DNA of 64,000 bases, from contig CM121342.1 of the NCBI GenBank assembly GCA_051530055.1, positions 8,695,480 through 8,759,479 of the forward strand, written 5' to 3'. Origin of the DNA: Neoechinorhynchus agilis. Lineage: Eukaryota > Animalia > Acanthocephala. Below, in pieces: positions 2,553-62,043 of this stretch. Each line of letters begins with the position of its first letter. The stretch's first letter is position 1. The notes under the pieces are model-generated. The model was not told the origin of the DNA and did no database searches. It saw only the letters and a program-made list of their open reading frames with translations. The position numbers and the translations under genes are program-made.

Positions 2553-4454
2553 ATGAACGCGAGATTGTTCTATGCAAGTCAAACTGGTACCAGTCAGCTC
2601 TTTGCCGCCTACATATCTGCATGGATGCGCTCCCATAAATTCCTAGTTTATCCTGTAAGTCCTCTTAGACAATGTGAGCTCGATGATCTACTAGCGGTTA
2701 ACTGTGGCTCAAAAACACTTTGGATTTTTCTTATTTCATCCGCTACTGATGGTGAAATTCCGTTCCGCGATGGCCACACGTTCTGGAAAAAGATAATGAG
2801 GAAAGATGTTCCCCTGTATCCACAAAAACCACCAGATCTACTTTGTGAGGTTTGTGTTATTGCAATCGGTGATAGTTCTTATTCCGATTCTTATAATTTC
2901 GCCGGTAAAAAATTATTTATATAACAGGAACAAATACTGCTTAGGTAGATATGACTAATTTGTGGTATTTGATCTTATAGAAGATTTAAACAACTTCGTT
3001 TTCCAAGTCAGCTTGGTCTTGTTTTAATTGATGAGCAACATCCTGCAGGATCCGACGGCCAAATTATCGAGTTTGTCTCAACCAAATTGTCTGAATTTTG
3101 CGAAAAGAACTTGCATTCTAACCAAGGCCAAATCAGTAAATTTCCCAGTCGTAAACCACCTCCTAAGTATTTAACGACATTTACAGTTCTAGAGAACAAA
3201 AGAATAACCCCTGAGTCCCATTTTCAGGACGTTCGCTTAATCAGTCTTAAAAGCGACGGTCAAACCTACAATTTGGGTTCATTATTGTACATTGCGGCTC
3301 TGAATCCACAGGACTGCATTGATGACTTAAGTGAATTTTTGCGGTACTACGATAACCAAGAATTTAGATCGCTTTTTCTATCTAAATTCGACCTTAATGG
3401 AGTTCCAAGTCCGTGTTTTATAGCAGTTTTATCCACGTTCCAACACTGAGGGGAGAATAAAATGTGTTTTACGATGTTGGATGACTGCATTATAAAATGG
3501 ATCCTTGAAATCTGCGCTTTAAACACAAGTCATGAGTTGGAGGAAGAAATGGAACGTCTCAGTGAACTTTGTAATACGTCTTCCTACGATGAATATATCT
3601 ACTATATGAGAAGACCTCGGCGTACCTTGAGTGAATTTCTCAGAGAATTTCCTGGCGCTGCATCAAATGCAATTGGATTTGTTCACCAAAAATACAACGA
3701 TGGAGATATTGATTTTGTTTGCTGGCCTAAGATTATTCCTCGACCCTACTCAGTGGCATCTAATTTTGAACAACATAAAGGTCAGATAGATTTGCTTTAT
3801 CTAGTTGTTCAATATCAAACGAGCATTCGAAAACCACGGAGAGGATTATGTTCGAATTATCTGGCTGGTTTAAAGCCGGGGAAAATCGTTAAAGGAGAAC
3901 TGTTTCCAATGGGTTTAATTCATGGATGAATTGTGGCGGGTGGAGGGCTTTTATCTGTCATCCACGAGGTACCTCATATTGACACTATTCAACGTTTAAA
4001 GCCAAGTCAACCGTTAGTCATGATAGCTACTGGAACTGGTATTTCTCTTTTCAGAAATCTAATGTATTGTAACCGGGAGAGAATTTTGTTTTTTGGATGC
4101 AGGTATCGAAATGCCGACTTTTACTTTAGGGATGAAATCGAGCATCTAGCAATTACCGACGATCGATTCAAGTATTTTGTTTGTTTTTCACGTGAGGGTC
4201 AGGGTTTCGGTGAGCCTAAGTATGTTCAAGATTTGTTGGAACTCGAAGCCATTACTGTTTGCAGTGCAATCGTCGATCGTGAAGGTATAGTGATTGTGTG
4301 TGGTAGTGGATGTTCTAAATCTCCTCAAGGTGTTGAGCACGCCCTTTCAAAGTCGCTTGTAAATGGTGGACGCTATTTTACCGAAACGGAAGCGTCAAAT
4401 TTCATACTAAGAATGAAGAAGAGCAAAATGCTAATTTTTGAGACGTGGGATTAA
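2553..4454 (+). CDS. NDOR1: NADPH-dependent diflavin oxidoreductase 1-like (flavodoxin + FAD + NADPH domains), interrupted by three TA-flanked non-GT-AG segments
   Basis: Motifs in order: YASQTGT, IGDSSY..NFAGKKL, DEQHPAG, RRPRRTLSEFL, PRPYSVAS, RRGLCSNYL, ATGTGIS, FFGCR, FSRE..KYVQD, terminal ETWD. Four same-frame ORFs are separated by three in-frame stops. Confidence 0.85.
2920..2979 (+). other. TA-flanked foldback intervening sequence (60 nt) in NDOR1
   Basis: TA at 2918-2919 and 2978-2979. Stem AGGA-a-CAAATAC / GTATTTG-a-TCTT. Removal gives KKLFRRFKQL. No local GT-AG combination I tried keeps the frame open. Confidence 0.75.
3421..3471 (+). other. TA-flanked intervening sequence (51 nt) in NDOR1, 8-nt direct repeat GTGTTTTA
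   Basis: GTGTTTTA at 3413-3420 and 3464-3471. Internal TTTTAT/ATAAAA stem. Contains the in-frame TGA at 3447. The joined peptide is somewhat shorter than the NDOR1 homologues I recall. Confidence 0.5.
3918..3971 (+). other. TA-flanked foldback intervening sequence (~54 nt) in NDOR1
   Basis: Stem CATGGATGA / TCATCCACG, TA at 3916-3917 and 3970-3971, contains the in-frame TGA at 3927. Boundaries were inferred by analogy with the other elements. Confidence 0.45.
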
Positions 4455-5178: not shown

Positions 5179-5229
5179 ATGTTGTGGTATATCTTCTTTT
5201 CAATTATTCTCATAACCACCTCTTGGCTT

Positions 5230-5261
<32 letters not shown>

Positions 5262-5618: not shown

Positions 5619-9883
<4,265 letters not shown>

Positions 9884-12172: not shown

Positions 12173-13375
12173 TTCATCGATACCTTGCGGAAGTTTCAAG
12201 GATCTTATAATAGCAGAATATCACAATAGGCTTCTCCGAAGTATATAAAACGCAGCAAACTCGACATTAGTCACAGGCGGTTGGAGACAACGAACACTTC
12301 GATTCATCGATACCTTGCGGAAGTTTAAGGATCTTATAATAGCAGAATATCACAAAGGCTTCCAACAAACTCGACATTAGTCACAGGCTTGGTTGGAGAC
12401 AATGCGGAAACACTTCGATTCATCGATACCTTGCGGAAGTTCAAGATCTTATAATAGCAGAATATCACAATAGGCTTCTCGAAGTATATAAAACGCAGCA
12501 AACTCGACATTAGTCACAGGCTTGGTTGGAGACAATGCGGAAAACACTTCGATTCATCGATACCTTGCGGAAGTTTCAAGGATCTTATAATAGCAGAATA
12601 TCACAATAGGCTTCTCCGAAGTATATAAAACGCAGCAAACTCGACATTAGTCACAGGCTTGGTTGGAGACAATGCGGAAAACACTTCGATTCATCGATAC
12701 CTTGCGGAAGTTTCAAGGATCTTATAATAGCAGAATATCACAATAGGCTTCTCCGAAGTATATAAAACGCAGCAAACTCGACATTAGTCACAGGCTTGGT
12801 TGGAGACAATGCGGAAAACACTTCGATTCATCGATACCTTGCGGAAGTTTCAAGGATCTTATAATAGCAGAATATCACAACAGGCTTCTCCGAAGTATAT
12901 AAAACGCAGCAAACTCGACATTAGTCACAGGCTTGGTTGGAGACAATGCGGAAAACACTTCGATTCATCGATACCTTGCGGAAGTTTCAAGGATCTTATA
13001 ATAGCAGAATATCACAATAGGCTTCTCCGAAGTATATAAAACGCAGCAAACTCGACATTAGTCACAGGCTTGGTTGGAGACAATGCGGAAAACACTTCGA
13101 TTCATCGATACCTTGCGGAAGTTTCAAGGATCTTATAATAGCAGAATATCACAATAGGCTTCTCCGAAGTATATAAAACGCAGCAAACTCGACATTAGTC
13201 ACAGGCTTGGTTGGAGACAATGCGGAAAACACTTCGATTCATCGATACCTTGCGGAAGTTTCAAGGATCTTATAATAGCAGAATATCACAATAGGCTTCT
13301 CCGAAGTATATAAAACGCAGCAAACTCGACATTAGTCACAGGCTTGGTTGGAGACAATGCGGAAAACACTTCGAT
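12173..13375. repeat. Tandem array of a 137-bp unit, about 9 copies (first three degenerate)
   Basis: TTCGATTCATCG recurs at 12548, 12685, 12822, 12959, 13096, 13233 (period 137), with near-identical units. Confidence 0.97.
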
Positions 13376-15061: not shown

Positions 15062-17185
15062 TCAATTTTCTCCTTGAAAATTGCCTGCATTCTCATCCAA
15101 GCGTTTCGCAGCTTCCTCGTCGACCCGATTATAGTCTTCCAAACTATGTATATAAAACAACTTAGGATCGATTGTTGTTATTGTCCTGAAAAGCAAATCC
15201 TCTGTAACGGGCCTTTCAATACTTTCTTTGATCGCCATTGCAGTTTGGAAAGTATTGGCGATGTCCTTATCGTTTCTGACCCGAATCATCTTCCATTCAC
15301 CTCCCTCGACAACGCATTCGATTATCTTTTCATTGCATTGAAACAATTGAGCCGTGAGTCGAATCCGGGCGAACGGTTCATTGTACTTTCTAACATACAG
15401 AAATCCACCAGAACCGATTTTTCGCTTTTCCATCACGTGGCCAGGAATTACCAATTTGAAGTCGACCGAATTCAGTCGTGGAGGTTTATACTTTAGCAGC
15501 TCGTAAAATGTTCCAAAAATATAAGGCATATAAACGGGCTGAAATATAAGACCGTCTGTCTCATGAGGGAGTTCTCTTTTAAACTTCTCATTCAAAAGAT
15601 GTTTACTGTGTTTGAGGCCGTAAAAATCCTTTCTTCGAATCCCAAACGGTTCTCGACTTCGGTCTATCGCTCCGCATTCCATTGCACGATGACGAGGCAA
15701 AATAATCTCTCTCAAAATGAGTTCCAAGCGTTTATCAAAGTCGAGTTCTTTACCGGCAGGATGCCCGTTGAATGCCAAGACGTCGAATATAAGAAATCGA
15801 GGAATCCGTTTGCCTTCAACTACATCTTCCACCATCTCTCCATCAAGTAAAGTCTGACGAAGATGATCTTTGGTGCCACGTTTCGTCACAAACGTCAGGT
15901 TTCTCACTTTAAAGATTGAATTGCGCCGGTCAATCATATAAATTTCGTTTTTCGCTCGAATTAAACACAAATACCGGGTTCCGTCATCCTTCCAGCTTAC
16001 GCGATAATCCAATTGCCGCAATTTTTGGATATTATTGAGTGTCATTGATACCGGCTGGCTACCGATGAATCCTCTTCCATGACTTTCTGGACAAAGGTCC
16101 TTTATGTTTTGTCGAATTTCGTTGATTTTTCTTCGATCTCTGTCGTATTTTAGTCGATAGATGAACGGAACATCTACCGAGAAGCCCTCTGATAAACCTG
16201 TTGGTTGGTTTACTTCCTCATTCGAACTATCCAGAATGGAAGGATTTGGTTTTTCCGCTAGCGCGTCGATTTTCCTTTTTGATTTAAAATCTGCCGACTT
16301 TGGGTCAACTGCAACCCTTTTTCTACGTGGACTTTGTTCCCGGGTTTTCGAGTCCGTTATTTGCGCCATTCGAATGTGTTCATCCTCCTCTTTAATTATT
16401 TGAGTCTTGAGCGAAGAATTTAACTCAGTTTGATGATCAGCGGACGATTGCGAAACTCTTCGCTTCGACCGAATGCTGTGCTCGTCCGAATCACTTATGG
16501 ATCGTTTTCGTCCACCAGCGATCTTCTTTCTCTTAATATCGGCGATATCGATTACGTCGTTTGCTTCTTGCTTTGATCCATAATTTGTACTGGTTTCGAT
16601 ACTCACGGCTTCTGTCGAATTCTTGGTGGATGCCGGATCCTTGGTATCAATTTTGCGCTTTAATAGCACGCCGGTTCGCCAACTCGAGTACCGTGATCTC
16701 AATCCGTGAATAACTCGAGGAGCTTGAATTCCTGGGGCACGACATCTCCGAAATTCCGCTATGGCACTTCTCAATTTCATTTTCTTCTTTTCAATCAGAT
16801 AAGAAGAAATAAGAAAACCGGATTGATTGTATCCGCGTGTACAATGAACCGCGATGACTGAATTCGGTTTCGATTCCAGAAGGCTATCACAAATCTCCAT
16901 AAATCTGTTTTTGATTTCCTTTCTCGGATAATCCTTGTGTTCGTCGCAAGGCAGACAATAGTGCAATACATTGAAATGATCTGTGAATTCTTTGCTTTGA
17001 TAATATTCTTCGTTATTGATAAGGCTAATGATCCCGGCAATAGATCGATTTTCGGCAATTTGGTGCATCCGGTTAATAGCAATCGCAGGAGTGAATCGTT
17101 TTGCCTCTGGAATGAGCGAATCGTATTGTGACGATAAAGGAGTCTTGCAAACGATAAAGCGGTCATTAATGAGACACGAACTCAT
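15062..17185 (-). CDS. RNGTT: mRNA capping enzyme (RNA triphosphatase + guanylyltransferase), single exon, 707 aa
   Basis: N-terminal DSP-like domain (VHCTRGYNQSGFLI); GTase motifs GSQPVSM, SWKDDGTRY (KxDG), LLDGEMV, FDVL, DGLIFQP, LKYKPP..NSVDF, RVRNDK..AN. Confidence 0.95.
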   Translation of the reverse strand: MSSCLINDRFIVCKTPLSSQYDSLIPEAKRFTPAIAINRMHQIAENRSIAGIISLINNEEYYQSKEFTDHFNVLHYCLPCDEHKDYPRKEIKNRFMEICDSLLESKPNSVIAVHCTRGYNQSGFLISSYLIEKKKMKLRSAIAEFRRCRAPGIQAPRVIHGLRSRYSSWRTGVLLKRKIDTKDPASTKNSTEAVSIETSTNYGSKQEANDVIDIADIKRKKIAGGRKRSISDSDEHSIRSKRRVSQSSADHQTELNSSLKTQIIKEEDEHIRMAQITDSKTREQSPRRKRVAVDPKSADFKSKRKIDALAEKPNPSILDSSNEEVNQPTGLSEGFSVDVPFIYRLKYDRDRRKINEIRQNIKDLCPESHGRGFIGSQPVSMTLNNIQKLRQLDYRVSWKDDGTRYLCLIRAKNEIYMIDRRNSIFKVRNLTFVTKRGTKDHLRQTLLDGEMVEDVVEGKRIPRFLIFDVLAFNGHPAGKELDFDKRLELILREIILPRHRAMECGAIDRSREPFGIRRKDFYGLKHSKHLLNEKFKRELPHETDGLIFQPVYMPYIFGTFYELLKYKPPRLNSVDFKLVIPGHVMEKRKIGSGGFLYVRKYNEPFARIRLTAQLFQCNEKIIECVVEGGEWKMIRVRNDKDIANTFQTAMAIKESIERPVTEDLLFRTITTIDPKLFYIHSLEDYNRVDEEAAKRLDENAGNFQGEN

Positions 17186-19507
17186 CGGTGCTGTATTTAA
17201 CCACTGATGAGGAATTCGTAGAATTGATTTTGGTTGATTAATCGTGATTTTTTTCCGAAGTCATTCTTGATGATTGATAGATATCGTAGACTATTTTTGA
17301 GGATTATAAGATCGTTTTGCTTTACTTGGTCGTTTTTGAAAAGGTTATCTCGGATTGCAAATAAGCAAACATGACGTAAATATTGATTTTGGACTCACAA
17401 ATATTGAAAGAGTATTGTTATTTGGATATTAAGCGTTGAACCACATGAAAGACTTTCTATTATCATTGCTTTGACTCAGTTTAACAAAACAGCAAATTTT
17501 TGGATTTAAGACTTTAACAGAAATTAAGCCCGCATTTTCCAATGAGTACGATGTCTCTGGCCGAATTCGATGATAACGAGCAATTCTTTAGATTTTATTC
17601 GAATAACAAATCAGTTAAAAACGCGTATTATTTGAATAACACGAATTCAGGTTTTGAAAGGCCTTAAAGATCTCATTTGTTAGACCCAGCGAATGTATAG
17701 CGCCCAGCAGATTTGCTGAACAAAGAATCAGACGAATCTTAGGACTTATCATCCCAGGTAATCGTGATAACCACAATCAACTCACAAAAAGGAGGATGAT
17801 CGCCTACTGGCAAGGATTTATGGACTTGTTGCGGAATCTAGGCAGCTAAAATTTATTTAACAGGAAAACCAACTTATTTTAGACTCTTTTAAACCTTTTG
17901 TAATGCCAACAAATGTAAAAGTGGCCAGCGAACGATTAGTGATTGTAATGCCAACACTAAGTTCATCGATAAGCGACGTATTGAAATTAAAAAAAGAAGC
18001 TCCTTCGAAGGGAAGATCAATTAAAAGGATTTAAATAGACTTGTCGAATACATTTAAGAGTGGTCGAAAATCCATCACAGAAGGTAATCGTAAGCCGTCT
18101 TTGAAAGGAAAGAGATCCCCGGCGCATTTGGTTGGGCGTTAATTCCTGTGCTTTTCGATAAAGTTGGATATTCTAACATCAAGACTCTATTTGTCCTCTA
18201 AATCTATAGAATGCTTTAATCGATGTCTTATTAATGATTTTGATTTAATCGCATCCTTATCTTTGCAGCAGTTCGATCTTTTAGTGAAGAATTCAACCTC
18301 GAACACATGACGGTCTCCAAGTCTGCTCATTTTTTGTTTCTAATTCCTATAAACGATTCAATAAGGATAAAATCCAACGGCAAATTGGAATCTTCGTAAG
18401 GGCGACCACTTCTCCGATGGGTTCTGGAGGGTGATTACGAACAAGAAACCGTATCTTCTTCTAATGTGGCAGCCGGCTAACGAAGCCGTGGAATAAATTT
18501 CTTATCAAGTTCTGTGAATTTCTATTAAAACCTTTCCCTTTTATTAGAATGTCGCATGTTCATTACAATAAAATTCGGTAGCACGTTCATTTAAAGGCAA
18601 CGCTTGAGGACGATTTCAGCATCTCCTGATTCTCAATGTATTTGATCATTTCGAAGAAAATCGGCTTGCTCAATTGAATTTTGATCAGTCGGTGGATTGT
18701 CCACTGATTTCTCAACCGCATGTTATCCTTTTCGAATTTATCCAAATTAAGCAACTGAAAAGAAATGCGGCTACAAAATACTAATTAAATAGCCCGTGAG
18801 ATTTTCAGGTTTAAAGGAAATTTCAGTTCAATTCTTCCTTTGGGAGCATCGAGTCCAGTTAGACAAAATGCGAACATCGAATAAATAAAATGACTTTATA
18901 TTTGAATTCCCGACAGTTAAACGCAATGGGTTTTTAGCGTTTCAATTTTTAGGCCATTAATCGATATTTCTGATTGAAAAATAACGATTTTTTTATATAT
19001 TGCCACCTTAAAGTATCGATTTTAAATTTTTATTCGAAGAAGCTTAAAACTGTCCGTCGGTACAATAATAAACATTTTCTATTCAGTACTTTAGAAAACC
19101 CAAGAAAATCGCTTTAAACCTAAGACTTTGAGCAATAAAACAAAGTGACTACTTTTCCCGCATTGATTTATCGATAAAAATACGACGACTAAAAATTTTA
19201 AATGTGCGCCGAATAATAAAACGGACCCGAATTCTGTCGTTTTTTCGTAACTTCCAAAACGCCGTCCGCTTTCTAACGCGCTGCACCCGCATTCCTCGCG
19301 TCGTTCTGTTTTGTTCTCCGGTGAATCGAGCGACTTTGGCGATGGTGGAAAATTGTTTACGTTCGTACCGAGGACGAATGGAAGCGTCTCAATGCAAGTG
19401 AGTAATATTTTGAAATTGTGGGAAATCTCTGTTTTTCCGATTAATTTTCTTGTGGCAGTTTTTTCAAGCTATAATGAGAAATTTCTTTGTTTGAATGGAC
19501 AAAGTTG

Positions 19508-22500
19508 GAGTTCGGCGTGAAGAGCGTCGCAGTTGACGTCGCACTTTTCTTGCTCCTCGTTGCCCAGACTTTTTTGAAATAATTCTCTCACCATCCGCAC
19601 ACTCCGCGACTTACTCCGCAGAGACCGTGGACTTCTCATATGTCGGAGATGTGTAATCCGTACAACAAATACACATTTCTTACGTCATAACTCATCATTT
19701 TTCAATTTTGGATCGTTTTACGACAAAAATTGGTCGAAAACACACATTTTATCCGACTTCAGTTAAATCACCGGAATCGTGCATTTGAAATTGGAATTTT
19801 ATCTACAGAGTTAAGCTGCGTTCATCGTTAGCTTGAGGTCGCGTTCGGCGTGAAGAGCGTCGCAGTTGACGTCGCACTTTTCTTGCTCCTCGTTGCCCAG
19901 ACGTTTTTGAAATAATTCTCTCACCATCCGTAAACTCCGCGACTTACTCCGCGGAGACCGTGGACTTCTCATATGTCGTGGATGTGTAATCCGCACAACA
20001 AATAAACATTTCTTACGTCATAAGACTCATCATTTTTTCAATTTTGGATCGTTTTACGACAAAAATTAGTCGAAAACACACATTTTATTCGACTTCAGTT
20101 TTAAATCACCGGAATCGTCCATTTTAAATTGGAATTTTATCTACGGAGTTAAGCTGCGTTCATCGTTAGTTTGAGGTCGCGTTCGGCGTGAAGAGCGTCG
20201 CAGTTGACGTCGCACTTTTCTTGCTCCTCGTTCCCCAGACCTTTTTGAAATAATTCTCTCACCATCCGCACACTCCGCGACTTACTCCGCAGAGACCGTG
20301 GACTTCTCATATGTCGGGGATGTGTAATCCGTACAACAAATAAACTTTTCTCTTACGTCATAAGACTCATCATTTTTTCAATTTTGAATCGTTTCACGAC
20401 AAAAATTGGTCGAAAACACACACTTTATCCGACTTCAGTTAAATCACCGGAATCGTCCATTTGAAATTGGAATTTTATCTACAGAGTTAAGCTGCGTTCA
20501 TCGTTAGTTTGAGGTCGCGTTCGGCGTGAAGAGCGTCGCAGTTGACGTCGCACTTTTCTGCTCCTCGTTCCCCAGACCTTTTGGAAATAATTCTCTCACC
20601 ATCCGCACACTCCGCGACTTACTCCGCAGAGACCGTGGACTTCTCATATGTCGGGGATGTGTAATCCGCACAACAAATAAACTTTTTCTTACGTCATAAG
20701 ACTCATCATTTTTTCAATTTTGAATCGTTTCACGACGAAAATTAGTCGAAAACACACACTTTATCCGACTTCAGTTAAATCACCGGAATCGTCCATTTGA
20801 AATTGGAATTTTATCTACAGAGTTAAGCTGCGTTCATCGTTAGTTTGAGGTCGCGTTCGGCGTGAAGAGCGTCGCAGTTGACGTCGCACTTTTCTTGCTC
20901 CTCGTTGCCCAGACCTTTTTGAAATAATTCTCTCACCATCCGTACACTCCGCGACTTACTCCGCAGAGACCGTGGACTTCTCATATGTCGGAGATGTGTA
21001 ATCCGTACAACAAATAAACATTTCTTACGTCATAAGACTCATCATTTTTTCAATTTTAGATCGTTTTACGACGAAAATTAGTCGAAAACACACACTTTAT
21101 CCGACTTCAGTTAAATCACCGGAATCGTCCATTTGAAATTGGAATTTTATCTACAGAGTTAAGCTGCGTTCATCGTTAGTTTGAGGTCGCGTTCGGCGTG
21201 AAGAGCGTCGCAGTTGACGTCGCACTTTTCTTGCTCCTCGTTGCCCAGACCTTTTTGAAATAATTCTCTCACCATCCGTAAACTCCGCGACTTACTCCGC
21301 GGAGACCGTGGACTTCTCATATGTCGGGGATGTGTAATCCGTACAACAAATAAACATTTCTTACGTCATAAGACTCATCATTTTTTCAATTTTATATCGT
21401 TTTACGACAAAAATTGGTCGAAAACACACACTTTATCCGACTTCAGTTAAATCACCGGAATCGTCCATTTGAAATTGAATTTTTACCTACAGAGTTAAGC
21501 TGCGTTCATCGTTAGTTTGAGGTCGCGTTCGGCGTGAAGAGCGAAGCAGTGGACGTCGCACTTTTCTTGCTCCTCGTTGCCCAGACCTTTTTGAAATAAT
21601 TCTCTCACCATCCGTAAACTCCGCGACTTACTCCGCGGAGACCGTGGACTTCTCATATGTCGGGGATGTGTAATCCGCACAACAAATAAACTTTTCTTAC
21701 GTCATAAGACTCATCATTTTTTCAATTTTGAATCGTTTCACGACAAAAATTGGTCGAAAACACACACTTTATCCGACTTCAGTTAAATCACCGGAATCGT
21801 CCATTTGAAATTGGAATTTTATCTACAGAGTTAAGCTGCGTTCATCGTTAGTTTGAGGTCGCGTTCGGCGTGAAGAGCGTCGCAGTTGACGTCGCACTTT
21901 TCTTGCTCCTCGTTCCCCAGACCTTTTTGAAATAATTCTCTCACCATCCGCACACTCCGCGACTTACTCCGCAGAGACCGTGGACTTCTCATATGTCGGG
22001 GATGTGTAATCCGCACAACAAATAAACTTTTCTTACGTCATAAGACTCATCATTTTTCTTCAATTTTGAATCGTTTCACGACGAAAATTAGTCGAAACAC
22101 ACACTTTATCCGACTTCAGTTAAATCACCGGAATCGTCCACTTGAAATTGGAATTTTATCTACAGAGTTAAGCTGCGTTCATCGTTAGTTTGAGGTCGCG
22201 TTCGGCGCGGAAGAGCGTCGCAGTTGACGTCGCACTTTTCTTGCTCCTCGTTCCCCAGACCTTTTTGAAATAATTCTCTCACCATCCGCACACTCCGCGA
22301 CTTACTCCGCAGAGACCGTGGACTTCTCATATGTCGGAGATGTGTAATCCGTACAACAAATAAACATTTCTTACGTCATAAGACTCATCATTTTTTCAAT
22401 TTTAGATCGTTTTACGATAAAAATTAGTCGAAAACACACATTTTATTCGACTTTAGTTAAATCACCGGAATCGTCCATTTGAAATTGGAATTTTATCTAC

Positions 22501-25500: not shown

Positions 25501-25830
25501 ATTTGAAATTGGAATTTTATCTACAGAGTTAAGCTGCGTTCATCGTTAGTTTGAGGTCGCGTTCGGCGTGAAGAGCGTCGCAGTTGACGTCGCACTTTTC
25601 TTGCTCCTCGTTCCCCAGACCTTTTTGAAATAATTCTCTCCCTATCCGCACACCGCGACGTACACCTCAGACACCGTTGAATTCTCGTACGTCGGAGATG
25701 TGTAATCCGTACAACAAATAAACATTTCTTACGTCATAAGACTCATCATTTTTTCAATTTTGGATCATTTTACGACAGAAACGGATCGAAAACACACATT
25801 TTATCCAAATTTGCTTACATCACAACCAAT
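19508..25830. repeat. Satellite array, ~336-bp unit, about 19 copies
   Basis: GAGTTAAGCTGCGTTCATCG recurs every ~336 nt (for example, repeated antisense ORFs at 21495 and 21831). Units are highly similar and the terminal unit is diverged. Confidence 0.98.
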
Positions 25831-27508: not shown

Positions 27509-27547
27509 ACACCTAGCTTTCGCCGTCCAACGGCTTCTTCAGGGTGT
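27509..27547 (-). ncRNA. Minimal type I hammerhead ribozyme (Penelope pLTR)
   Basis: Reverse complement reads ACACC CTGAAGA A GCCG-TTGGA-CGGC GAAA GCTA GGTGT: stem I ACACC/GGTGT, palindromic AGCT stem III. Confidence 0.85.
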
Positions 27548-28568: not shown

Positions 28569-28607
28569 ACACCCTGAAGAAGCCGTTGGACGGCGAAAGC
28601 TAGGTGT
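28569..28607 (+). ncRNA. Minimal type I hammerhead ribozyme (Penelope pLTR)
   Basis: ACACC CTGAAGA A GCCG TTGGA CGGC GAAA GCTA^GGTGT; predicted cleavage after 28602. Confidence 0.85.
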
Positions 28608-44211: not shown

Positions 44212-46314
44212 TTACTGTTTTCGATATATTGTTGTTTTACATGTTGGTTTCAATCGATCCAACATTGTTGGCAGCCTCCTTCCATACAGCATAACCGCCG
44301 GGGATTTGCCTGTTGTGCTGTGCGGCGTGTTTCTGTATGATAAGAGAAATTGTTGTACCCTCAACGATCGATCCTGCGGATGCGTTACTTTGATCGCTCT
44401 ATCTTTAAGTGTTCGTACAAATTTTTCAGCCAATCCATTTGACCGAGAGTGATAGGGTGTGATGCGGTTGTGCCGTATTCCGTTGGTTCTTAAAAACGAC
44501 TGGAATTGATTTGACGTGAATGGCGAACCATTATCAGAAACCAGCTCCTCTGGTATGTGCAATCGTGCAAAAACCTCCCTCATGCTCCTTATCACACATT
44601 CGGCCGTAGTGCGTTGCAGCATGATTACCTCTGCCCACTTTGTCAACGCACAGATCATGACTAAATATGATACTTCATCGCATGGACCAGCGAAATCCAC
44701 GTGAACTCGCGTCCACGGCTCACTCGGGATGTTGTAAGTGAACATTGGATGTTCGGGTTCTTTGGGCCCATTTTCTTGGCAATCAACACACCGACCAACG
44801 AACGTCTCTATATCCTGATTGATGTTCGGCCACCACACAAAATAACGGGCTAATGCCTTCATCGACGTAATACCTGGATGTCCGGCGTGTATGCACCCAA
44901 AGCATCTTGCTGGAGTGTTTTCGGGATTATGATTTTAGTATTCCACATCACGATTCCGTCTTCGGTTGCGAGCTCCGTGTATCGACTACTGTAAGCTTGT
45001 AGTGAGGCATGTGTCGTCGACAGCCAATTTTTTCTACAAATGACTTTACTTGATGTAGGACCGTGTCTTGAGCTGTTTCCACCTTTATCCTTTCTACGGT
45101 TAATTCCAAGAAATCTGCTCTTTCATCTTGTATGAGTTTGATTGAGCTATCGTTTACCTCATCAAGCACAGATTCATCCTCGGTTTCTTCACACGAGAGC
45201 CGCGAGAGTACATCCGCCATGTTATTCTCCTGTCCTTTTATATGTTCCAAGACGTATTTGTACTGTGAAAGTATCAATCCCCAACGCACTAATCGGTGGT
45301 TTACTACTTTTCGCAGATCTCTCTTATCGCCGAATACATAATTCAGTGGCTTATTGTCAGTTTTCAGCACAAATTCACGGCCGGCCAGAAACATGTTGAA
45401 TTGGGTGACTCCGAGCACCAGAGCGAGTGCTTCTCTATCGATTTGAGCATATTTTTGCTCCGCGGCTTTCAATGTTCTGGACGCATACGCTACTGGTCGA
45501 TACATTCCTTTGTGTGCTTCTTGTAGTAGAACAGCGCCGACTCCTCGCTCACAGCCATCACAAATAACCTGCAATTTACTCGTTGGCGTCAGCCAAAGCA
45601 TCGTTGATCTTTTTGATTTGGTTTGTCATCTCATCTGACCATGCCCATACACATTTCGAACTCGTCAGTTTATACAAACCTGCACACTTGGCTTGTATAT
45701 TTGGTAGGAACTTCTACAAAAAGTTTACCGATCCGAGAAATGCTCGGAGTTCTGCATTCGTTGGTGTTTTCATGTTTTGAATCGCTTTGATCCTCTCGTT
45801 ACTTGGTCGAATTGAAGTGTTATCCAAAATATAGCCCATAAACGACACTTCTTGTTGAAGAAAAATGCATTTATTTCCTCTTCTTCGCATTCCAGCTTTC
45901 TGCAACCTTTTTAAGACTTCTTCCAATCTGTTTAAATGACTCGTATCATTCTTGCCAGTGATTATTATATCATCTAGGTAAACAGCGACGCCATCAATAT
46001 CTGCAATCAGCTGTTCCATGTAGCGCTGGAACATTAACGGCGCTGCTGAAACCCCGGAATGGAAGCCGACAATATCGAAAATATCCGAGTGGTGTGGCGA
46101 TTGTCAACAGAGAACGTGGATTCGGTTCCACTATCATCTGTAAGTATGCCTCTTTTAAATCTAGTACTGAATATTTCTTTCCATCCGCTATTTTAAACAT
46201 TATTTCGTCGAAAGTTGGCATGCTATATACATCCAGTGGTAGATGCAGATTGATCGTCAAACGAAAATCACCGCATAATCGTAGACTTCCATCCCGTTTT
46301 CTTATTGTTACCAA
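44212..46314 (-). mobile_element. Degenerate Ty3/gypsy pol (RT-RNaseH-integrase)
   Basis: KRDGSLRLCGDFR, YLDDII, CDGCERGVGAVL, YAQIDREAL, WWPNINQDIE..C..C, WTRVHVDFAGP, SDNGSPF, SNGLAE. Frameshifted. Confidence 0.93.
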
Positions 46315-46319
46315 AGGTG

Positions 46320-48860
46320 TCGGATTCCAGGATCACTGTCAACAAATGCTTGAAGCAAGACAGTTATCACATGCCCACTTTCGATGACATAGTGCACAGA
46401 TTAGGAGGTGGCACGAAATACTCCACCATCGATTTGTCAGATGCCTACCTACAGTTAGAGGTTTGCATAAGACCACCGAAAGTTCTTAAACATAACGACA
46501 CCATGGGGATTGTGCAGTTACCGAAGGATGCCATTTGGCCTGAGCTGCACACCTCAGATATTCCGAAAATTTATTTACAATTTATTGGCAAACATCCCGA
46601 GTACCGGTGCATACCTGGACGATATAATTGTCACCGGAAAAGACGATGTCGAACATTTGGAGAATTTGAAGACAGTCTTCGAGCGATTGGAAAAAGCAGG
46701 TATAGGCGTCCGAAGGGGCAAATACAAATTCATGCAATCCCAGGTCCGATATTTGGGACACACGCTTCAAGATAACAAGATAAGACCACAAAAAGAGAAG
46801 GTGGAAACGATCACCGAAGCGCGTGTCCCGCGCAATAAAAAAGAATTAAAATCGTTCTTGGGCGTGGTTAACTACCTGGAAAGATTCATTCCCCGGTTAC
46901 AGAATCAATGCAGAGCCCTGTATGAGTTGCTGAGACAAGGAATTCCCTGGAAATGGAGCAGGCAGAAGAAAGACAGTTTCGAGCAAGTAAAGGATGCGGT
47001 GCGAAACCACAAGGTTTTGGTACCTTTGGAAATGAAAAGAAATATTGTGCTGACATGCGACGTGAGTGAAGACGGAATTTGAGCGGTATTCTTTCACTAA
47101 AGGGAAGACGGCGCCAAAGAACCGATCATGTTCGAGTCCCGAACATTGATTCCAGCGGAAAAGAAATATGCGACCATCGAGAAGGAAGCGTGCGGTGAAG
47201 AGGTGCCACCAGTTCCTATATGGCCATCGATTTATCTTGCAGACGGATCACAAGCCTCTGCAACACATCTTCGAAACAAACGAGACCTGTAAAGATGACG
47301 AAGAACCGACTTGTGCGCTGGGGATTTCTTGAACCAATACGATTTCGAAATCGAGTACGTTCAATTGGCCGAGAACAAATATGCCGATTTCCTGTCCAGA
47401 TTTCCAATGAATCCACCAAAGCATAGATACTCAGAAGAAGAGGAGATAATGCTGCGATTAGTACAGAAGGAGAAAGCTGAAGCTTGCGGAATGACCAAGC
47501 CAAGATTAAAATCGGAGTCGATGAAAGATCTTCAGCTGACATCGGGCGGCCTAAGACGGTACTTGAGATGGACAAGCCGTTCGCGGCAAGGGCAGACGAA
47601 CTGTCAATGGAAAATGATATTGAAAATGATCATTCCATTGAAACTGCGAAAAAGTGTAATGAATATTCTACACAATGGACACCCAGGGATCGAAGCGACG
47701 AAATCAACATGCCGGTTTTACGTATGGTGGCCAGGCATAGAGTAGGACATCCGACGCAAGGTAGCGAGTTGCGATCGTTTCTACCACCCATCAGAAGTCT
47801 GGGAACGCGTACATATCGACCAGGCGGGGCCAATAAACTCAAAGATGTTCTTAGTTTTGGCGGACGCCAGGAGCAAGTGGCCCAAGGTCTGGCATTACAA
47901 CACGTGCCAAATATCTGCTGAAATGGTAATTGACCGGATGAGAGAGGTGTTTGCCCGATTCGGAATGCCAAAGAAAATCGTTAGTGATAATGGACCACAA
48001 TTTATGGCACGCCAATTTACCGAGTTTTACGAAGAAAACGGCATCGAGGCGATTAAAGCGAGTCCTTATCACCCACAAACGAATGGGCTGGTGGAACGTT
48101 TTATTGGCACATTAAAAAGACGAGGAATGACGAGTGCATCAACGGATACCCGGAAAGTACTGAACGAATTCTTGCAAACATATAGAAACATCCCTCATGC
48201 AATCACAGGAAAGGCCCCCGCGGAAATACTGTTAGGAAGAACATTGAACACTGTGTCCGATAACCTCAGACTGGAGATCGAGGAAACTGTAAAGGACCAA
48301 TCAACTCGAAGGCAGATTCACAGACCTGTGGGGAATTATCGCGAATTCGAGAAAGGCAATCAGGTTTGATGGAAACAAGGAAGAGAAGGAGAATGGAGAT
48401 AGGGAATCGTAGAACGAAGATCAGGACCGGTATCGTACAAAATCGCAGACCAAAATGGAACTCAAAATAGGACTCATGGGAATTTTGTTAGACGAAGAGA
48501 CCATCACGAAGAAAATGAGCGAGCTTCAGAAAGGATCGAAATAAGACCGAAGAAGGGGATCAACGAAGGGCGGAAATCAAAGCAGAGGAAGGAAGGGAAT
48601 GGAATGATCCGAGGCAGGCTGATAGGGAAACAGCGGATGGACAGGATATGATTCAGGGACAAGCAATTCCGACCCTGAGAAGAAGTCAACGGCGTCGAAG
48701 ACCGCCCATTCTGCCCTACGATGAGTACCGGAAAACAAACTAAGAATGAATGGGGGAGGAAATGTGGCAAATCGATATGCGTGATTTGTGTTCGTTTTAA
48801 AAACATCAACGATCATGTCCACAGGGTGTAGACCTAAACAATAATTCCAATCACATTCCA
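46320..48860 (+). mobile_element. Second degenerate Ty3/gypsy pol (RT-RNaseH-integrase) with putative PPT (GGGGGAGGA ~48752) and 3' LTR start (TGTGG ~48763)
   Basis: IDLSDAYLQL, YLDDIIVTG, TCDVSEDG, LHNGHPGIEATK..VWWPGI, SDNGPQF, PYHPQTNGLVERF. Confidence 0.9.
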
Positions 48861-52266: not shown

Positions 52267-53012
52267 ACCGCATCATTGAGTGATCCGAGCGAGAGGATGT
52301 AAAAGTCGGTGTGCGTGATTGTGGAAATCACACAATAAATAAAGGAGTGTGTTGATCCGTTTACTGGTCATTTAGGCGGCTCTATCCCGCCTTCTAACCT
52401 AGTCAAATTAAATGAGGCTAAGCAATCGTCCACCTTGAGAACTTAAATTCTCAATCACCCGAATCTTCTTGCCATGGAACGGACATGAATGGTATACACA
52501 TGTGGAAAGTTGATTAGTAGTCCGTGTTATCTTATAAATTACTTTATAGACGGACTATTACCTGAGAACTCAATGACCTCGGTTTTTCTGAATGACTGTC
52601 CACTTGCTTATCAAATCCGTTTGACGGACGTTAACTTGATTAATCACGTTCGGAGTACGATTTTGAGCGTCATTATTTAATACACATTGAGGAAATAGGA
52701 TTCTTAAAAAAAAGTTCACTACATATGCTCAAAAGCTAAATTTAGCTTTATTTGTTCACTTCCAAAAGCTTTATTTTCTCTTACAAGAAATCTTTCTCGC
52801 GCATTATGCTTAGTCTTTAGCCAATCAGAGTGATATGCACAGGCGCCTTCTCATGCACAATTTATCTCACTTCCGACGCCTTTCGTCGCTGTTATATGTC
52901 TGTGTGTGCTCGCAAGTTGACGAGAAGTTCTTACCCAAATCATTTAGTTTTGATATAGTTGCAACTCAATCTGGAACGAAGAAATATTCATAAGAACCTG
53001 CACTCTGTCTGT

Positions 53013-54919
53013 ATGTCGTCTTCATTTCGTTCCTTTAATACGACTGGCGATACGTCTCATGTTGCTTCTAACTGTGAAGAAAACAACAAGGTATCCTTTT
53101 CTTGCTTCTAGCAAATTGATTGATGGATTTATCTCAATATGCATGTAAGCGACGAGACATTTTTAAGCTCAGCAATATGCGAGTTTTCATCATTATCCAC
53201 AAAAACTTTAATAAAATGTAACCTATTTTGAAAAAAAAACATATATATATTTCAATTAATTATTTTAAGCGTACAAACTGATTATGACTCACTTTAACAC
53301 TTCTGAACACACACACATTTTATAGTGAGAATAATATCAAGGATTTTTTAAAAATGAAAAATACTCAAAAAAATTAGATGTTATGAATTATTAGATTAGA
53401 TTCCAATAAGAAAATATAAAAGACTTTATCACACCAAAATTTCATCTTTTTTTCATAAGCGTTTCGATTGCGAATTCAAGTTTTAATACGAATGCGTTTC
53501 TATTTCAGTGCAAATAAGTGTCTATTGCCATAAAAATATCGGAAGAAGTTGAAAATATAAGTTATAGTGAACTATTAGCTTTTCTTCAAGTACATAAAGC
53601 ACTTCAATATTTCAAAATATTGATTTTTTTGATTAAAAATCCCTTAGTTATTTGGCAACCAACACTTTTTTTCGGGATTTTTACGCACAAAATCATTTCA
53701 GCTGCTAGTACTCGACTATCGGAACAAGCAGCTTGCCGGTTTCCAAGTGAATGGGCACCTAATGATTTGTCTGCCTCAAGCCTACCAGTTATTCTTATCG
53801 GACGTTATCGGGGGCATGCACACCGTTTACACAAAGTTGAAGCGATTGGGTATACAGCCAATAATCTGCAATGTCGAACAAGTTAGTATCTAAGTGGATA
53901 TTCTGCTCTTAAACTGAAATCTGATTTTCTTCAGGTTCGTTTACTTCGTGGTGTAGGCGCCATACAAAGTGGAGTTAATCGGTGCAAGTTAATAAAGCCT
54001 GGGGAGTTTGATAAACTCTACGAGGATTGCACAGATTTAAAGTGAGATTCTGATTTAGTGAATTACATAAATAGGAAAATTAGCTCTAGGCCAGGTAGAC
54101 CTGCAAAAAGAGTATCGCCTATTAGTAAAGATGAATGCAAACCTCAAAAGCGGCAGCATGTGGATACTTATAACTCTTTCGGTCTATGGCCTGGGGGAGG
54201 TTTGACTTTAGATTTGAACTAAAATGCTCCAACCTGACGAAAAGGTTCGAGTAATGTTGAAGCGACGTTCACCGGCGACAGAAGGTTCATTCACCCGTCA
54301 TTATATGGCAGTAACATTCATCATCCAACGTTGCTCGCTCCAATGGTCAATCCAAATAGAGTTCATACAGAATCCTTCAGCCATTCGCTTCTGCCGTCCA
54401 ATTTAGTTTATGGTGGCGAATATCAAAGAACGAGGAATTTTACGTGAGTTCCTTTTTGCTAATAAAACTTTAATTCGCTAATTTAGTGTTCCTCGTGAAT
54501 ACCAACCAAGAAGATCTAACAGATATCGGGGTGAGCTTTCTATCCCTAAGAGTATGCCATTATTATTACTTCGTCTAAAAAGAATCATTCATGATCGACA
54601 ATTTGATTGACAAATCACCGAAGCAAGAGCAGCCAATGGAAATTAATAATAAACTCCAGACTATTATAAACGAGATTTCTTCTCTTAATCAATCATTGAG
54701 TTCAATCGATACTCATCTTAAGGGAGCTGTCCATGATGATCTTCGTAAGTGAGAGACATCATTTTTCTTGGAATTATTGCGTTTCAAATTAAAGAAATAA
54801 TTAAAAATGAGTACAGCCAATCAAAACTCGTTACAAGAAGGCTCCAAAAGCAACTCTCCATTTATACAAGAAATGGTCGATACCAATACGGATTTTCACC
54901 GCGACTGTTTAGGATGTAG
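53013..54919 (+). CDS. dac: Dachshund-family (Ski/Sno/Dac) transcription regulator, about 8 exons
   Basis: Spliced translation ICLPQAYQLFLSDVIGGMHTVYTKLKRLGIQPIICNVEQ|VRLLRGVGAIQSGVNRCKLI..LYEDC..SRPGRPAKR. Introns 53091-53701, 53882-53934 and 54042-54083 are GT-AG. Confidence 0.9.
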
Positions 54920-56474: not shown

Positions 56475-57212
56475 ATGGTATTCACAAATGGAATTGGTAG
56501 TTTTAATGTGAAAGCAAAATCGATTTCGATCGCCGTCGAAGGCAACATTGGCAGTGGGAAGACGACATTGCTCCATCACATGTCAAAAAAGCTCAAATGT
56601 TCAGTTATATGCGAACCCGTGAATGAATGGCGTGACCTTGACAATCAGAATCTTTTAAAGAAGCTTTATTCAAACCCTAAGCGCTGGTGCACGACGTTCC
56701 AAACAAAAGTTATGCTGGATATGGCTCGTATCCATCGATCAGCATGCGAACCTGGAATCAATTTCCTTGAACGGACCATTTATAGCGCAAAGCATTGCTT
56801 TGTGGACGTTATGTACGACCTTAGCTGACCGAGTGATATAGATTTGGGGGTCTTAAGATAAAATCTATATTTTAAGCTGATGGACAAAGCGGAGCATAGT
56901 ATTCTTTGTCAACTGTATAAAGAACTCTTGGAACATAATTTACCACGAACTGATATTGTGCTTTATATTCAGAGTTGTCCTAAAGTTTGCTATGAACGAA
57001 TCAGGCTTAGGAATATCCCCGAAGAAGTGGCACACATTGATCTTGCTTACTTGCAAAGAATTCATAACGCTCATCATGAATGGATCGAGTCTCTAAGAAA
57101 GGAAGATGGACCCGATTCTCCTATTGTAATTACTGCTAATGGAGATTTGGATGCTAATGAAGTGCTCGATGATGTCATTGACAAACTTAATTCACTTATT
57201 ATGATGATGTGA
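56475..57212 (+). CDS. Deoxynucleoside kinase (TK2/dNK family) with one TA-flanked segment
   Basis: IAVEGNIGSGKTT P-loop, EPVNEWR, Y..PKRW..FQ, ERTIYSA, YERIRLR..EE, YLQRIH. Confidence 0.93.
56824..56874 (+). other. TA-flanked foldback intervening sequence (51 nt) in dNK
   Basis: TTA repeats at 56821-56823 and 56872-56874; perfect 10-bp stem ATATAGATTT/AAATCTATAT. Removal gives FVDVMYDLKLMDKAEH. Confidence 0.65.
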
Positions 57213-59226: not shown

Positions 59227-62043
59227 TCATTGCCCATACTCACTACCGACAGCACTATTCACCTCTCGTTTCCTTCTCCAAACCACGCAGGTTCTATCAG
59301 CGCTTGTACTTACAAACGCATCCGTCTCGTATGGATGCCATCGAGCTTGGACGACTTTATCTGAATGCCGACCAACGATTGTCATTCCATTGTTGGGACC
59401 ATTCACAAAGGATCCAATTCTTAAAGTCATATCATACGACGCAGTCAATACTGTCGGCGCTGCTCCGTTCGATTCCGAACAGAATCTAATCGATCGAACT
59501 TGACCGTCGTGGATCTCGTTTAGGTTAGCCCGTGGTTGTACCGATCGCTGATGAGGTTGACCCATCATGCGTAAATCCCAAAGAAAGATCTTGGCGTCTT
59601 CGTGACTACTTGCAAGAAGGTATGAGGAATCGGCGTGAATTGCTGCTACAGGACTTAAAGTGGACGTAGTTGATATTTCCGCAGATGGATTCCTTAGATC
59701 CCAAAGTCGAATAGACCGGTCAAATGATCCACTGATAAGTGTAGATACAATTGAGGGACATTGGGCGAGGCAGTATACGTGGCCTCTGTGCGATGTGAGG
59801 GAGCGAATGGTTTGTCGAGAAATCACGTCAGTTATTGCTGCTGAGATTGTCGATTTTTAACATTTTTAAAAAATGTTAAGTTTGTGAAAAAAGTCGAAAT
59901 CGCCACACTCGCTCTCTTTTTTTTATAGAAAACTCATGGGAATCGTGAGTTATTTTTATAAGGCGGACTACAGATTAAAACTCAATAAAAGCCACCGTGG
60001 CATACCGTTTAGACCTGACTAACAACAAATCAATATCTATTCTTCTCATCACCAAAAAAGAACACATATTAAATAGGCGTAAATTGGGACACTTGGTGGT
60101 TAAATAGGCCGACTTTTAATCCAGACATAGTTTGAGTTAAAATACAAAGTGTGTAAAGTATTCCCTGCTCGGTAAGGGAAGTCTTTTACGAAAATTAGCA
60201 CTTAAGGGTGTTCTAAACGTCGCGCGGGATGTACGAATCCTTTATTCGAAATGTCCATGGATTCTATTGTATTCCGTTAACTTAAATCACCAGAAACCTA
60301 TGATGGAAAGGTTTTTTTCGATTTGGTTTAAACAGACAAAACCTATGTTGGGTGATCGATTTTTTCCACCTTAAAAAATGCCAAAGCCTTTTAACAAAAA
60401 ATACATTTTCGTCACCTTTGGTTGTTTTGTTTAAATTTAGACTGAAAAGCTCCATGCTACTAAGAATTGTGTTCAATCCCAACAGATCTACATGGATTCT
60501 ACAGTCTCCCGCTCCTCCGCTAACAATAACATCCCCATCAGAACCGAAGAATAGTACGTCCCTGACAGTTCCGTTATGCAAGGTTAGCTGAGTGATCGAT
60601 CCGAGATGGCCGTTAGTAAAGTTGACTAGTTTAATGCTTTTGTCATTGGATCCAGAAGCAAGTAAACGTCCACTTGGGTGCCAGTCTAGGCAATAAATCG
60701 ATCCACCATGATAGTTTTCATAATGAGAGAGTACGTGAGTCGGTACAGGCGAACTCGTATTTTTTGCAGTCGTCAACGCTGGCCATAGACAAATCCGGAG
60801 CATTTTAGAATTTGATCCAACTGCGTAGTAATTTCCTTGTGTTGGGTGTATTTATTACAATTCTTTTTGAAACGGAGAAAAAGATTCGTAATTATATGGC
60901 AACAGCCCTAATGGCTTGAGCGTCCTGCATGTGATTTGCCCTATAGTATTCTATTCTTTTTTCTTGAGAAGGGCAAGTCCGATCAGATAATGAGAGAGCC
61001 TGGAGGTTTTCGACGGAATCGAACGTATGAGAAGGCGTGGGAGTTAGTGCTGCTGTTCCGGTGGTTACCGTTGATGTTGGAACGGAGGCTGCAGGTGGAG
61101 GCGGCGGAGGCGGTAAAGATTTCCGAGGATGTTCTTGCTTGAGTGTAGATTTGATTGGAACTGTGCAGAGACTGAGATTCCGTTGAGCGAATGAGCAAGA
61201 GAATGTCTCAATTGGAAGGAATTGAAGCCACGAGAGGAGTGATGCATCCATGTCCGTCATTGTTGTTTCAGCCAGCACAGACACGGTTCGACTACATAAA
61301 GACATGTTAGGTGGATTCTCAATGGATTGTGGATTCACGTTATCGTCGTCATTGAATACAGTAGCCGCTATTTGACAATATTCCATACATGTTTCGTAAA
61401 GAAGACCTTTTACAATCAATTGAATCAATCGATCATTCGTAGATTCACCGATGTCATTGTTCTTTGCGTGTTCAAGCGCCATACAACGCTCAATGCACTC
61501 ACTTTTGTTTCGACATAAATTCCATTTAGGATCGTTCACTATTGCAAAGAACCGCGATGTTAAACTCACACTCCTCTCACGTCGTATAAGACCCAAAAGC
61601 TGATTGACTTTTTCGCATTCACCTGGATATTCGGATAAATCTTTGCTAGTGAGGAGCATCGACAATAATTGGACTAATTTATCGTGAACGTCGATTTGAT
61701 CATTTATAAAATAGAGGTAAGAGAGCTCCAATGCTTGGTGAAGTCGAATAACCGTTATTTGTGCGTCGTTACCCGATACTTGAGAAGCAGCTCGTTCGTA
61801 ATCAGCGTTCTGAATGCTCTGTCGAAGAGAAGACGATCTTCTAAGACCATTAAGTATTCCAGTCTCTTGTTCAAGGTTCGTCGCTGAACTCGAAAATTGC
61901 TTTTTATACAGATATTCGAGAATGAGCTTGGTTACATCACTATCCTTGACGGTAACCCGAACATTTCCATATTCCTCGGGTGCTGGTATATTAACGGCGC
62001 TTTCCGACGGGATAAACGAATTGTGACTCGAATCGTCGTTCAT
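59227..62043 (-). CDS. WDR47: WD repeat-containing protein 47 (LisH/CTLH + C-terminal WD40), two TA-flanked segments; start codon uncertain
   Basis: VTVKDSDVTKLILEYL, DRLIQLIVKGLLYE.C.EYCQ, DAQAIRAVA|IHP..YYAVGSNSK.LRIC, HGGSIYCLDWHPSGRLLASGSNDK, GAGDCRI, HSDKVVQARWHP. Confidence 0.92.
59833..60488 (-). other. TA-flanked 656-nt intervening sequence in WDR47 with paired ends
   Basis: Minus strand GTA|GAT CTGTTGGGATTG ... CAATCTCAGCAG CAATA|ACT: a 12-bp stem with two G-U pairs. Removal gives GAGDCRIHVTDV. Confidence 0.7.
60849..60894 (-). other. TA-flanked foldback intervening sequence (46 nt) in WDR47
   Basis: Minus strand ATA|TAA TTACGAATCTTTTT..AAAAAGAATTGTAA TAAATA|CAC. Removal gives AVAIHPTQG. 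No local GT-AG solution found. Confidence 0.8.

Follow-up and report, generated by a model that had tools for sequence, protein, structure and literature searches.

How can a conserved gene stay in use when its reading frame is interrupted by a segment that lacks the borders of an ordinary intron? This question is raised by a stretch of 64,000 nucleotides (nt) from the acanthocephalan Neoechinorhynchus agilis (GenBank assembly GCA_051530055.1, contig CM121342.1, positions 8,695,480 to 8,759,479 of the forward strand), in which an NDOR1-like gene (2553-4454, + strand), a PMCA gene (5619 to about 9750, +), a dNK gene (56475-57212, +), and a WDR47 gene (62175-59227, -) contain such interruptions. 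The whole stretch is referred to as the window; gene coordinates are positions within it, and the conclusions drawn here rest on its DNA sequence. The explanation favoured, for which belief and doubt are evenly balanced, is that five segments in these genes are old TA-targeting insertions resembling miniature inverted-repeat transposable elements (MITEs), which leave the pre-mRNA as non-canonical introns with the help of a hairpin. Both the removal itself and its placing at the RNA level, as well as the guiding role of the hairpins, are what we infer from the evidence set out below.

Borders of the intervening segments

The original prediction had proposed seven TA-bounded segments in these four genes. 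Five of them, designated NDOR1-a, PMCA, dNK, WDR47-a, and WDR47-b, are upheld by homology and by the direct repeats at their junctions, and homologues are continuous at each of the five sites. The other two, NDOR1-b and NDOR1-c, could not be upheld and are treated further below.

NDOR1-a is 60 nt long and, owing to its TA repeat, can be placed in three registers from 2918-2977 to 2920-2979 (+), with the ends TA..TA, AT..AT, and TA..TA. It encodes a block of 20 amino acids (aa) with four stop codons between GKKL and RRFKQL, which is missing from all 35 aligned homologues, and its deletion raises the score against a hidden Markov model (HMM) of 106 homologues by 21.8 bits. Its inverted repeat pairs TATAAC..CAAATAC with GTATTTG..TTATA. 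The PMCA segment (61 nt; 6452-6512 to 6456-6516, +) is bounded by a TAAA repeat that allows five registers, none of which has GT-AG ends. In tblastn alignments with five homologues, query residue 56 is found at 6455 and the same residue again at 6514, and the joined product agrees with the aligned sequence of relatives across the site. The dNK segment (51 nt; 56821-56871 to 56824-56874, +) is bounded by a TTA repeat and has an alternative TG..AG register at 56826-56876. At this site the reading frame encodes 17 residues more than Drosophila dNK, and joining yields the product ..MYDLKLMDKAE...

Two further segments are located in WDR47 on the minus strand. WDR47-a (46 nt; 60897-60852 to 60894-60849) is bounded by an ATA repeat, and its deletion restores AIRAVAIHPTQGNYY. 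WDR47-b, with a length of 656 nt (60490-59835 to 60488-59833), is bounded by a TA repeat and reads open for about 70 codons; its deletion restores GAGDCRIHVTDVISRQ, the counterparts of which are GAGDCKIYVTDVKRQ in Adineta and GAGDCKIHVLDCQTQQ in Brachionus. The WDR47 sequences of a rotifer, an annelid, a mollusc, and a frog are unbroken across both sites. The direct repeats at the five junctions are 2-4 nt long and contain TA in every case, compared with 1.55% among random junctions of matching length in the window. This is far beyond chance, even if a few alternative products are granted for each site.

Conventional splice sites do not account for the segments. All in-frame, stop-free GT-AG, GC-AG, and AT-AC pairs around each of the five were listed exhaustively, and in none of the five is the homologous protein recovered with a GT-AG, a GC-AG, or a true AT-AC pair. 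The claim that GT-AG ends are lacking in the register that restores homology was therefore correct for all five upheld segments. WDR47-a has no in-frame GT-AG or GC-AG pair at all, and NDOR1-a has none that is workable. For PMCA, the only GT-AG option, 6451-6532 (CAG/GTAAAT and TTGCAG/, with the slash marking the splice junction), would remove the conserved GKMLVVA. The option for dNK (56808-56876) would remove the conserved and still encoded VMYDL, and the options for WDR47-b (60502-59841 and 60502-59838) would remove CRIHV, which is likewise conserved and still encoded. U12-type AT-AC introns were considered and rejected: the AT..AC pairs occur incidentally and would lose or gain residues, and ATATCC is found at the start of none of them.

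Ordinary introns exist side by side with these segments, as had been predicted. At least 10 of them with strong AG/GTRAGT...YAG signals are present in the window, and a normal spliceosome is thus evidently in use. Outside the segments, PMCA (about 1,150 codons), WDR47, dNK, and the neighbouring gene for the mRNA capping enzyme (RNGTT) are free of stop codons and frameshifts over a total of about 3,000 conserved codons, and the translation of NDOR1 retains the flavin- and NADPH-binding motifs. Judged by these sequences, the host genes of the segments look alive. In protein searches, PMCA is 70-74% identical to the PMCAs of the acanthocephalan Pomphorhynchus laevis and of a bdelloid rotifer, and WDR47 is 44% identical to that of Adineta and 39% to that of Brachionus. 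These identities indicate a host that is a syndermatan-like animal distant from the syndermatans represented in databases.

Transposon anatomy and hairpin structure

Cut-and-paste elements that target TA are characterised by a TA duplication together with inverted-repeat ends, a combination that is also the signature of Tc1/mariner transposons. Terminal inverted repeats are clear in NDOR1-a, PMCA, and WDR47-a and weaker in dNK and WDR47-b. The segments can be regarded as MITE-like because they are non-coding and small and combine TA duplication with inverted-repeat ends. The divergence of the hairpin arms suggests that the inserts are old, provided that the arms were well-matched inverted repeats at the outset. 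The inserts are neither copies nor reverse complements of their flanks or of other sequence in the window. By their anatomy, the five segments look like old insertions of TA-targeting transposons.

This is complemented by a comparison of intron positions, which covered the two WDR47 sites. The WDR47 gene of Adineta vaga has 11 short GT-AG introns and that of Brachionus calyciflorus has one, none of them at the position of WDR47-a or WDR47-b. Empty sites in relatives, which the original prediction had named as a check, are thus found at both WDR47 sites, and because no intron is present at the homologous positions, the two segments are regarded as insertions and not as ancestral introns. The WDR47 gene of the window shares none of the introns of Adineta or Brachionus, which points to a lineage that has lost ancestral introns on a large scale.

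Pairing of the two ends had been proposed for all segments, and this is only partly borne out. Compared with dinucleotide shuffles, NDOR1-a, PMCA, and WDR47-a fold with unusual stability (z = -2.8, -3.0, and -3.3, respectively), with an energy of -21.3 kcal/mol for the PMCA hairpin. Against 15,896 TA..TA stretches of similar length and G+C content in the window, the p-values are 0.010 for NDOR1-a, 0.002 for PMCA, 0.022 for WDR47-a, and 0.13 for dNK, and the Fisher combination for these four short segments is about 5e-5. In WDR47-b, a 12-bp helix with two G·U pairs arises between the ends (-17.0 kcal/mol, p = 0.03 against random), and the terminal 17 nt are an inverted repeat at 12 of 17 positions; a repeat finder gave no terminal inverted repeat for this 656-nt segment. 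The predicted fold of the dNK segment consists of an offset inner stem of 11 A/U-rich bp and, once flanks are added, an outer helix that spans the junctions. The predicted helices of NDOR1-a also reach across the junctions when flanks are included. Four canonical introns have fold z-scores from -1.1 to +1.8 and hence no hairpins. Pairing of the ends in the minimum-energy fold is a common property, which is found in 1,058 merged TA..TA stretches of the window. End pairing by itself is therefore not discriminating, and it is the stability alone that is unusual.

The pairing also differs between the strands. In all five segments the sense RNA folds more strongly than the antisense RNA, with composition-corrected z-scores of -2.9, -3.0, and -3.4 for sense and -1.3, -1.7, and -1.2 for antisense. 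The stems comprise 69 Watson-Crick pairs, 10 G·U pairs, and 8 mismatches (18 of 87 positions are non-Watson-Crick), with no A·C among them. Decay of repeats that pair at the DNA level should yield G·U and A·C equally, and pairing at the RNA level is therefore favoured; since the fold algorithm itself favours G·U, this imbalance is suggestive and not a proof. Two routes of removal had originally been offered, namely structure-guided splicing and DNA excision resembling that of the internal eliminated sequences (IESs) of ciliates, and the sense bias together with the balance of G·U and A·C leans towards the RNA-level route.

Two near-perfect TA-flanked hairpins are also found elsewhere in the window. 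One (52515-52560) is located in non-coding DNA downstream of a folate-receptor-like gene (51.35-52.27 kb, +), and the other (53634-53683) lies inside a canonical intron of a Ski/Dach-like gene (about 53.7-54 kb, +), just upstream of the AG acceptor. Both could be free-standing elements related to the exon inserts.

Weighing the explanations

According to the favoured explanation, small non-autonomous TA-targeting elements of the MITE or Tc1/mariner kind would have inserted into coding exons of a syndermatan lineage in which most ancestral introns had been lost. In the sense strand, the hairpin would juxtapose the two TA repeats, and cutting and joining would leave one copy of the repeat. The host genes would stay functional through this non-GT-AG removal from pre-mRNA, which would operate beside the splicing of ordinary GT-AG introns. 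As a working guess based on the analogy with Fritillaria, the machinery could be a spliceosome that tolerates structured ends without consensus, with an endonuclease-plus-ligase system as the alternative. It appears rather improbable that the animal possesses a second, structure-guided removal pathway that is independent of splice-site sequence, be it a euglenid-like cutting and ligation of RNA or, less likely still, an IES-like excision of DNA.

The two segments that could not be upheld are both located in NDOR1. NDOR1-b (proposed at 3421-3471, +) is a 51-nt unit between two GTGTTTTA repeats within 3413-3471 and contains an in-frame TGA at 3447-3449. It was rejected as an intervening segment: the region is colinear with homologues, its deletion costs 8 bits, and its fold has z = +0.6. 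The region of NDOR1-c (3920-3977, +) has about 18-24 excess aa and an in-frame TGA at 3927-3929. Its borders are not definable, as the deletion of 54-72 nt anywhere in the region adds 10-15 HMM bits, and the best candidate, a 54-nt deletion between TCAT repeats, is not TA-bounded (fold z = -0.7). An in-frame hairpin of the same gene at 3353-3396 was also considered as a hidden segment and rejected, its deletion costing 7.7 bits.

A further gene with in-frame stop codons is the ABCC4-like gene (about 40.0-43.7 kb, -). Its TGA at 41085-41083 (-) adjoins the Walker A motif and lies within the perfectly colinear sequence GKTSLLY-stop-ILNEL, and thus not every in-frame stop in this window needs an intron. 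Reassignment of TGA was rejected, as TGA terminates dNK, RNGTT, and WDR47 and does not occur within the about 3,000 conserved codons; a pseudogene, read-through, or UGA-to-UGG editing are possible explanations for the TGAs in NDOR1 and the ABCC4-like gene. The latter also contains a possible further case of a TA-bounded segment (42039-42095, -; 57 nt with two stops), the deletion of which gives KIAQFLG/YLSSLISTD; colinearity with ABCC4 was judged by eye in a part of the protein that is too divergent for validation. The membrane domain of this protein gave no match to any solved ABCC structure, and Pfam provided no validation either. A 17-aa insert in the nucleotide-binding domain was considered as a new segment and proved to be an ordinary GT-AG intron of 51 nt (40857-40907, -). 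It is in frame and stop-free and reads through as 17 residues, and such introns are therefore hidden to a reading based on open reading frames (ORFs) only.

Several observations weigh against the favoured explanation. As had been predicted, the segments share no obvious sequence: their five ends, read directly, have nothing in common beyond TA, which makes it difficult to see how U1, U6, and U2AF would recognise them, and no second copy of any segment was found within the 64-kb window, so that membership in a repeated family can at most be presumed. The energy of the dNK hairpin is insignificant (fold z = -0.4, genomic p = 0.13). An excess of TA-flanked perfect hairpins over the window as a whole was not found in a crude scan for perfect stems (15 hits compared with 13.6 ± 3.5 in shuffles), and the expectation that hairpins stand out from a shuffled background thus holds for the stability of three of the four short segments and not for hairpin number. 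The possible further case in the ABCC4-like gene has no hairpin (minimum free energy -2.9, p = 0.93). The three in-frame TGAs may mean that NDOR1 and the ABCC4-like gene are damaged or recoded. Finally, database gene models stop at the segments: WDR47 is represented by models of 426 aa (60895-62175) and 113 aa (59230-59571) with the middle uncalled, and dNK by a model of 117 aa (56862-57212).

These points raise the question of whether the segments are precisely removed. They might instead have disabled the genes they interrupt, which would then be pseudogenes, null alleles, or redundant copies, or they might be skipped via cryptic GT-AG sites, giving shortened proteins. This alternative is unlikely, and of all rivals it has to be taken most seriously. 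Skipping could use the in-frame GT-AG options of PMCA, dNK, and WDR47-b, of which the PMCA pair has good signals, and damage would fit the two in-frame TGAs of NDOR1 and the one of the ABCC4-like gene, the identity of just about 29% between NDOR1 and its homologues, the divergence of the ABCC4-like membrane domain from solved structures, and the gene models that end at the segments. It would also fit the reported loss of many core genes in parasitic syndermatans (PMC12690905). However, cryptic sites would discard the still intact and conserved KMLVVA of PMCA, CRIHV of WDR47, and VMYDL of dNK, and they offer no in-frame GT-AG or GC-AG option for WDR47-a and no workable one for NDOR1-a. Gene decay, in turn, would have to explain why, in four genes within 64 kb, TA-flanked inserts are the sole damage, about 3,000 conserved codons being otherwise free of stops and frameshifts, and why the diverged hairpin arms suggest old inserts while the frames stayed open. 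An origin of the inserts during assembly or amplification, as spurious palindromic insertions in the consensus, is very improbable. Tiny animals are often subjected to whole-genome amplification, which makes inverted chimeras (methods of bioRxiv 10.64898/2026.06.08.730799). Yet neither the flanks nor any other sequence in the window gave rise to the inserts, and there is a clean TA-containing duplication at each of five different, independent sequences. Moreover, none of the inserts presumably resembles a sequencing adapter.

Removal could also take place at a level other than pre-mRNA. If a domesticated transposase cut the segments out of the DNA of somatic nuclei precisely between the two TAs in a programmed manner, as happens in Paramecium, this would explain the TA borders, the single TA left after removal, and the fact that the segments are short and unique in the window; their 46-61 nt are within the size range of ciliate IESs. 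Such DNA excision is nevertheless improbable, as we know of no such system in animals and the strand-asymmetric pairing (10 G·U and no A·C, sense stronger than antisense) fits RNA. Four segment ends were compared with the IES consensus TAYAGYNR and none agrees with it completely, the 5' end of NDOR1-a fitting at 7 of 8 positions and its 3' end and both ends of WDR47-b at fewer. A weak argument in the same direction is that the chromosome-level assembly, presumably made from whole animals, retains all segments. At the level of translation, the ribosome could bypass the segments, and for two of them the layout is strikingly similar to that of T4 gene 60 (PMC5009743). In PMCA, AAA/TGA...AAA/ATG (6453-6458 and 6514-6516) provides matched in-frame codons with a stop next to the first and a hairpin in the 58-nt gap, and in WDR47-a the same arrangement is formed by ATA/TAA...ATA/CAC (60891-60896 and 60849-60851, -) with a hairpin in a 43-nt gap. 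These codon matches largely follow from the TA-rich repeats of 3-4 nt, however, and in NDOR1-a, dNK, and WDR47-b the in-frame codons at the two borders do not match. A hop of 656 nt over WDR47-b, which is open for about 70 codons, is implausible, and to our knowledge bypassing does not occur with cytosolic eukaryotic ribosomes. Translational bypassing is thus extremely improbable.

The remaining content of the window consists of further genes and of repetitive DNA. RNGTT is encoded by a single ORF of 732 aa (15065-17260, -). Satellite arrays are located at 19510-25806 (336-nt unit, 18.7 copies, 95% matches) and 12256-13375 (137-nt unit, 7.4 copies, 99% matches), and small arrays with units of 65 and 86 nt at 63611-63989. 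The region 44215-48366 contains two pol remnants of long terminal repeat retroelements in opposite orientation, with reverse transcriptase, RNase H, and integrase split into several ORFs. ORFs without a Pfam match are found at 26724-30682, including an inverted duplicate pair (27583-28299, -, and 28662-29348, +). The ORF 41323-41829 (-) is not conserved according to a search of a representative library, Rfam and tRNA scans of the window gave no match, and no conserved gene was found in the 8 kb past its right end.

Significance and comparison with known systems

If transcripts confirm removal from TA to TA, exonic transposons would be neutralised as non-GT-AG introns in a second animal lineage besides that of the larvacean Fritillaria, and for the first time in a protostome. 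With a hairpin as the sole shared signal and no consensus at the ends, the distinction between structure-defined and sequence-defined introns would become testable in an animal. The segments also bear on how mobile elements give rise to new introns after massive intron loss, and a structure-guided pathway, if real, would allow mobile elements to colonise exons genome-wide. A practical consequence is that genes of this kind are fragmented by standard gene predictors and splice-aware aligners, as seen for the models of WDR47 and dNK. In these parasites and their relatives, BUSCO-type completeness would thereby come out too low and gene loss would seem greater than it is. RNA reads could reveal either an important result or a set of broken genes.

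Transposon-derived non-GT-AG introns with target-site duplications (TSDs) and terminal inverted repeats (TIRs) have precedents (PMC11282704; bioRxiv 10.1101/2025.08.15.670264), and for rotifers, Seison, and acanthocephalans a literature search brought up no description of introns of this kind. Substrates of the bulge-helix-bulge type (two 3-nt bulges and a 4-bp helix) or the IRE1 type (twin 7-nt loops with CNGNNG) were considered and rejected, as the predicted folds place the junctions at the foot of a single long stem, in tails or ordinary helices.

Several known systems share part of the features described here. Like the segments, MITEs of the Tc1/mariner (Stowaway-like) kind have a TA duplication and terminal inverted repeats, are small, and have no coding capacity. 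Compared with them, four of the segments are at or below the usual size with 46-61 nt, further copies are absent from the 64 kb, and a recognisable Tc1/mariner terminal motif is lacking. Paramecium IESs are also TA-bounded, short, and unique, interrupt coding regions, and leave one TA. In contrast to the segments, which are retained in the assembly, they are excised at the DNA level and are missing from somatic genomes, and they have TAYAGYNR ends instead of long stems. Among bypass elements (T4 gene 60 as well as inserts in the mitochondria of Magnusiomyces capitatus; PMC5009743), counterparts can be seen for PMCA and WDR47-a, but the remaining three segments are unlike them. The bypass cases described so far are furthermore from phage and mitochondria, whereas the genes considered here are nuclear and translated by cytosolic ribosomes.

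More extensive similarities exist to introns that are derived from mobile elements or defined by structure. The introners of the dinoflagellate Amoebophrya (PMC7789003, via PMC11282704) are non-canonical introns of transposon origin with TSDs of 3-5 nt and TIRs, and the putative introns described here resemble them in this anatomy. The Amoebophrya introners form multi-copy families with conserved, strain-specific TIRs, and U1 snRNA is apparently absent (PMC7789003, via PMC11282704). The canonical 5' splice sites in the present window, in contrast, are strongly U1-like (AG/GTAAGT).

The nonconventional introns of euglenids (PMC11282704; PMC12501133) resemble the segments in their variable non-GT-AG borders and in inverted repeats that pair the ends in RNA. 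In both cases, TSD-like repeats blur the junction, lengths range from tens to thousands of nt in euglenids and from 46 to 656 nt here, and conventional introns occur alongside (PMC11282704; PMC12501133). The euglenid pairing motif, CAG at +4 to +6 with CTG at -8 to -6, is absent from the directly read ends of the five segments. Furthermore, the repeat always contains TA in the present case, and the host is an animal, whereas euglenids are protists.

Fritillaria borealis (Henriet et al. 2019, as represented in PMC11282704 and bioRxiv 10.1101/2025.08.15.670264) provides the parallel from within the animals, although it belongs to the Tunicata and the present host to the Syndermata. Its nuclear genome contains introns derived from non-autonomous DNA transposons with TIRs and TSDs, which have non-GT/AG ends and species-specific positions and occur alongside conserved GT-AG introns. 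Its introns have ends that are preferred family-wide (AG-AC and AG-AT after an exonic TAC), the non-canonical ones make up about 90-95% of all introns, and their removal by the spliceosome is proven. In the window, by comparison, TA alone is shared, each segment is unique, five segments are found next to at least 10 canonical introns, and the segments are known from genomic DNA alone. Considering all these systems, the closest to the segments described here are the introners of Fritillaria and the nonconventional introns of euglenids, followed by the introners of Amoebophrya.

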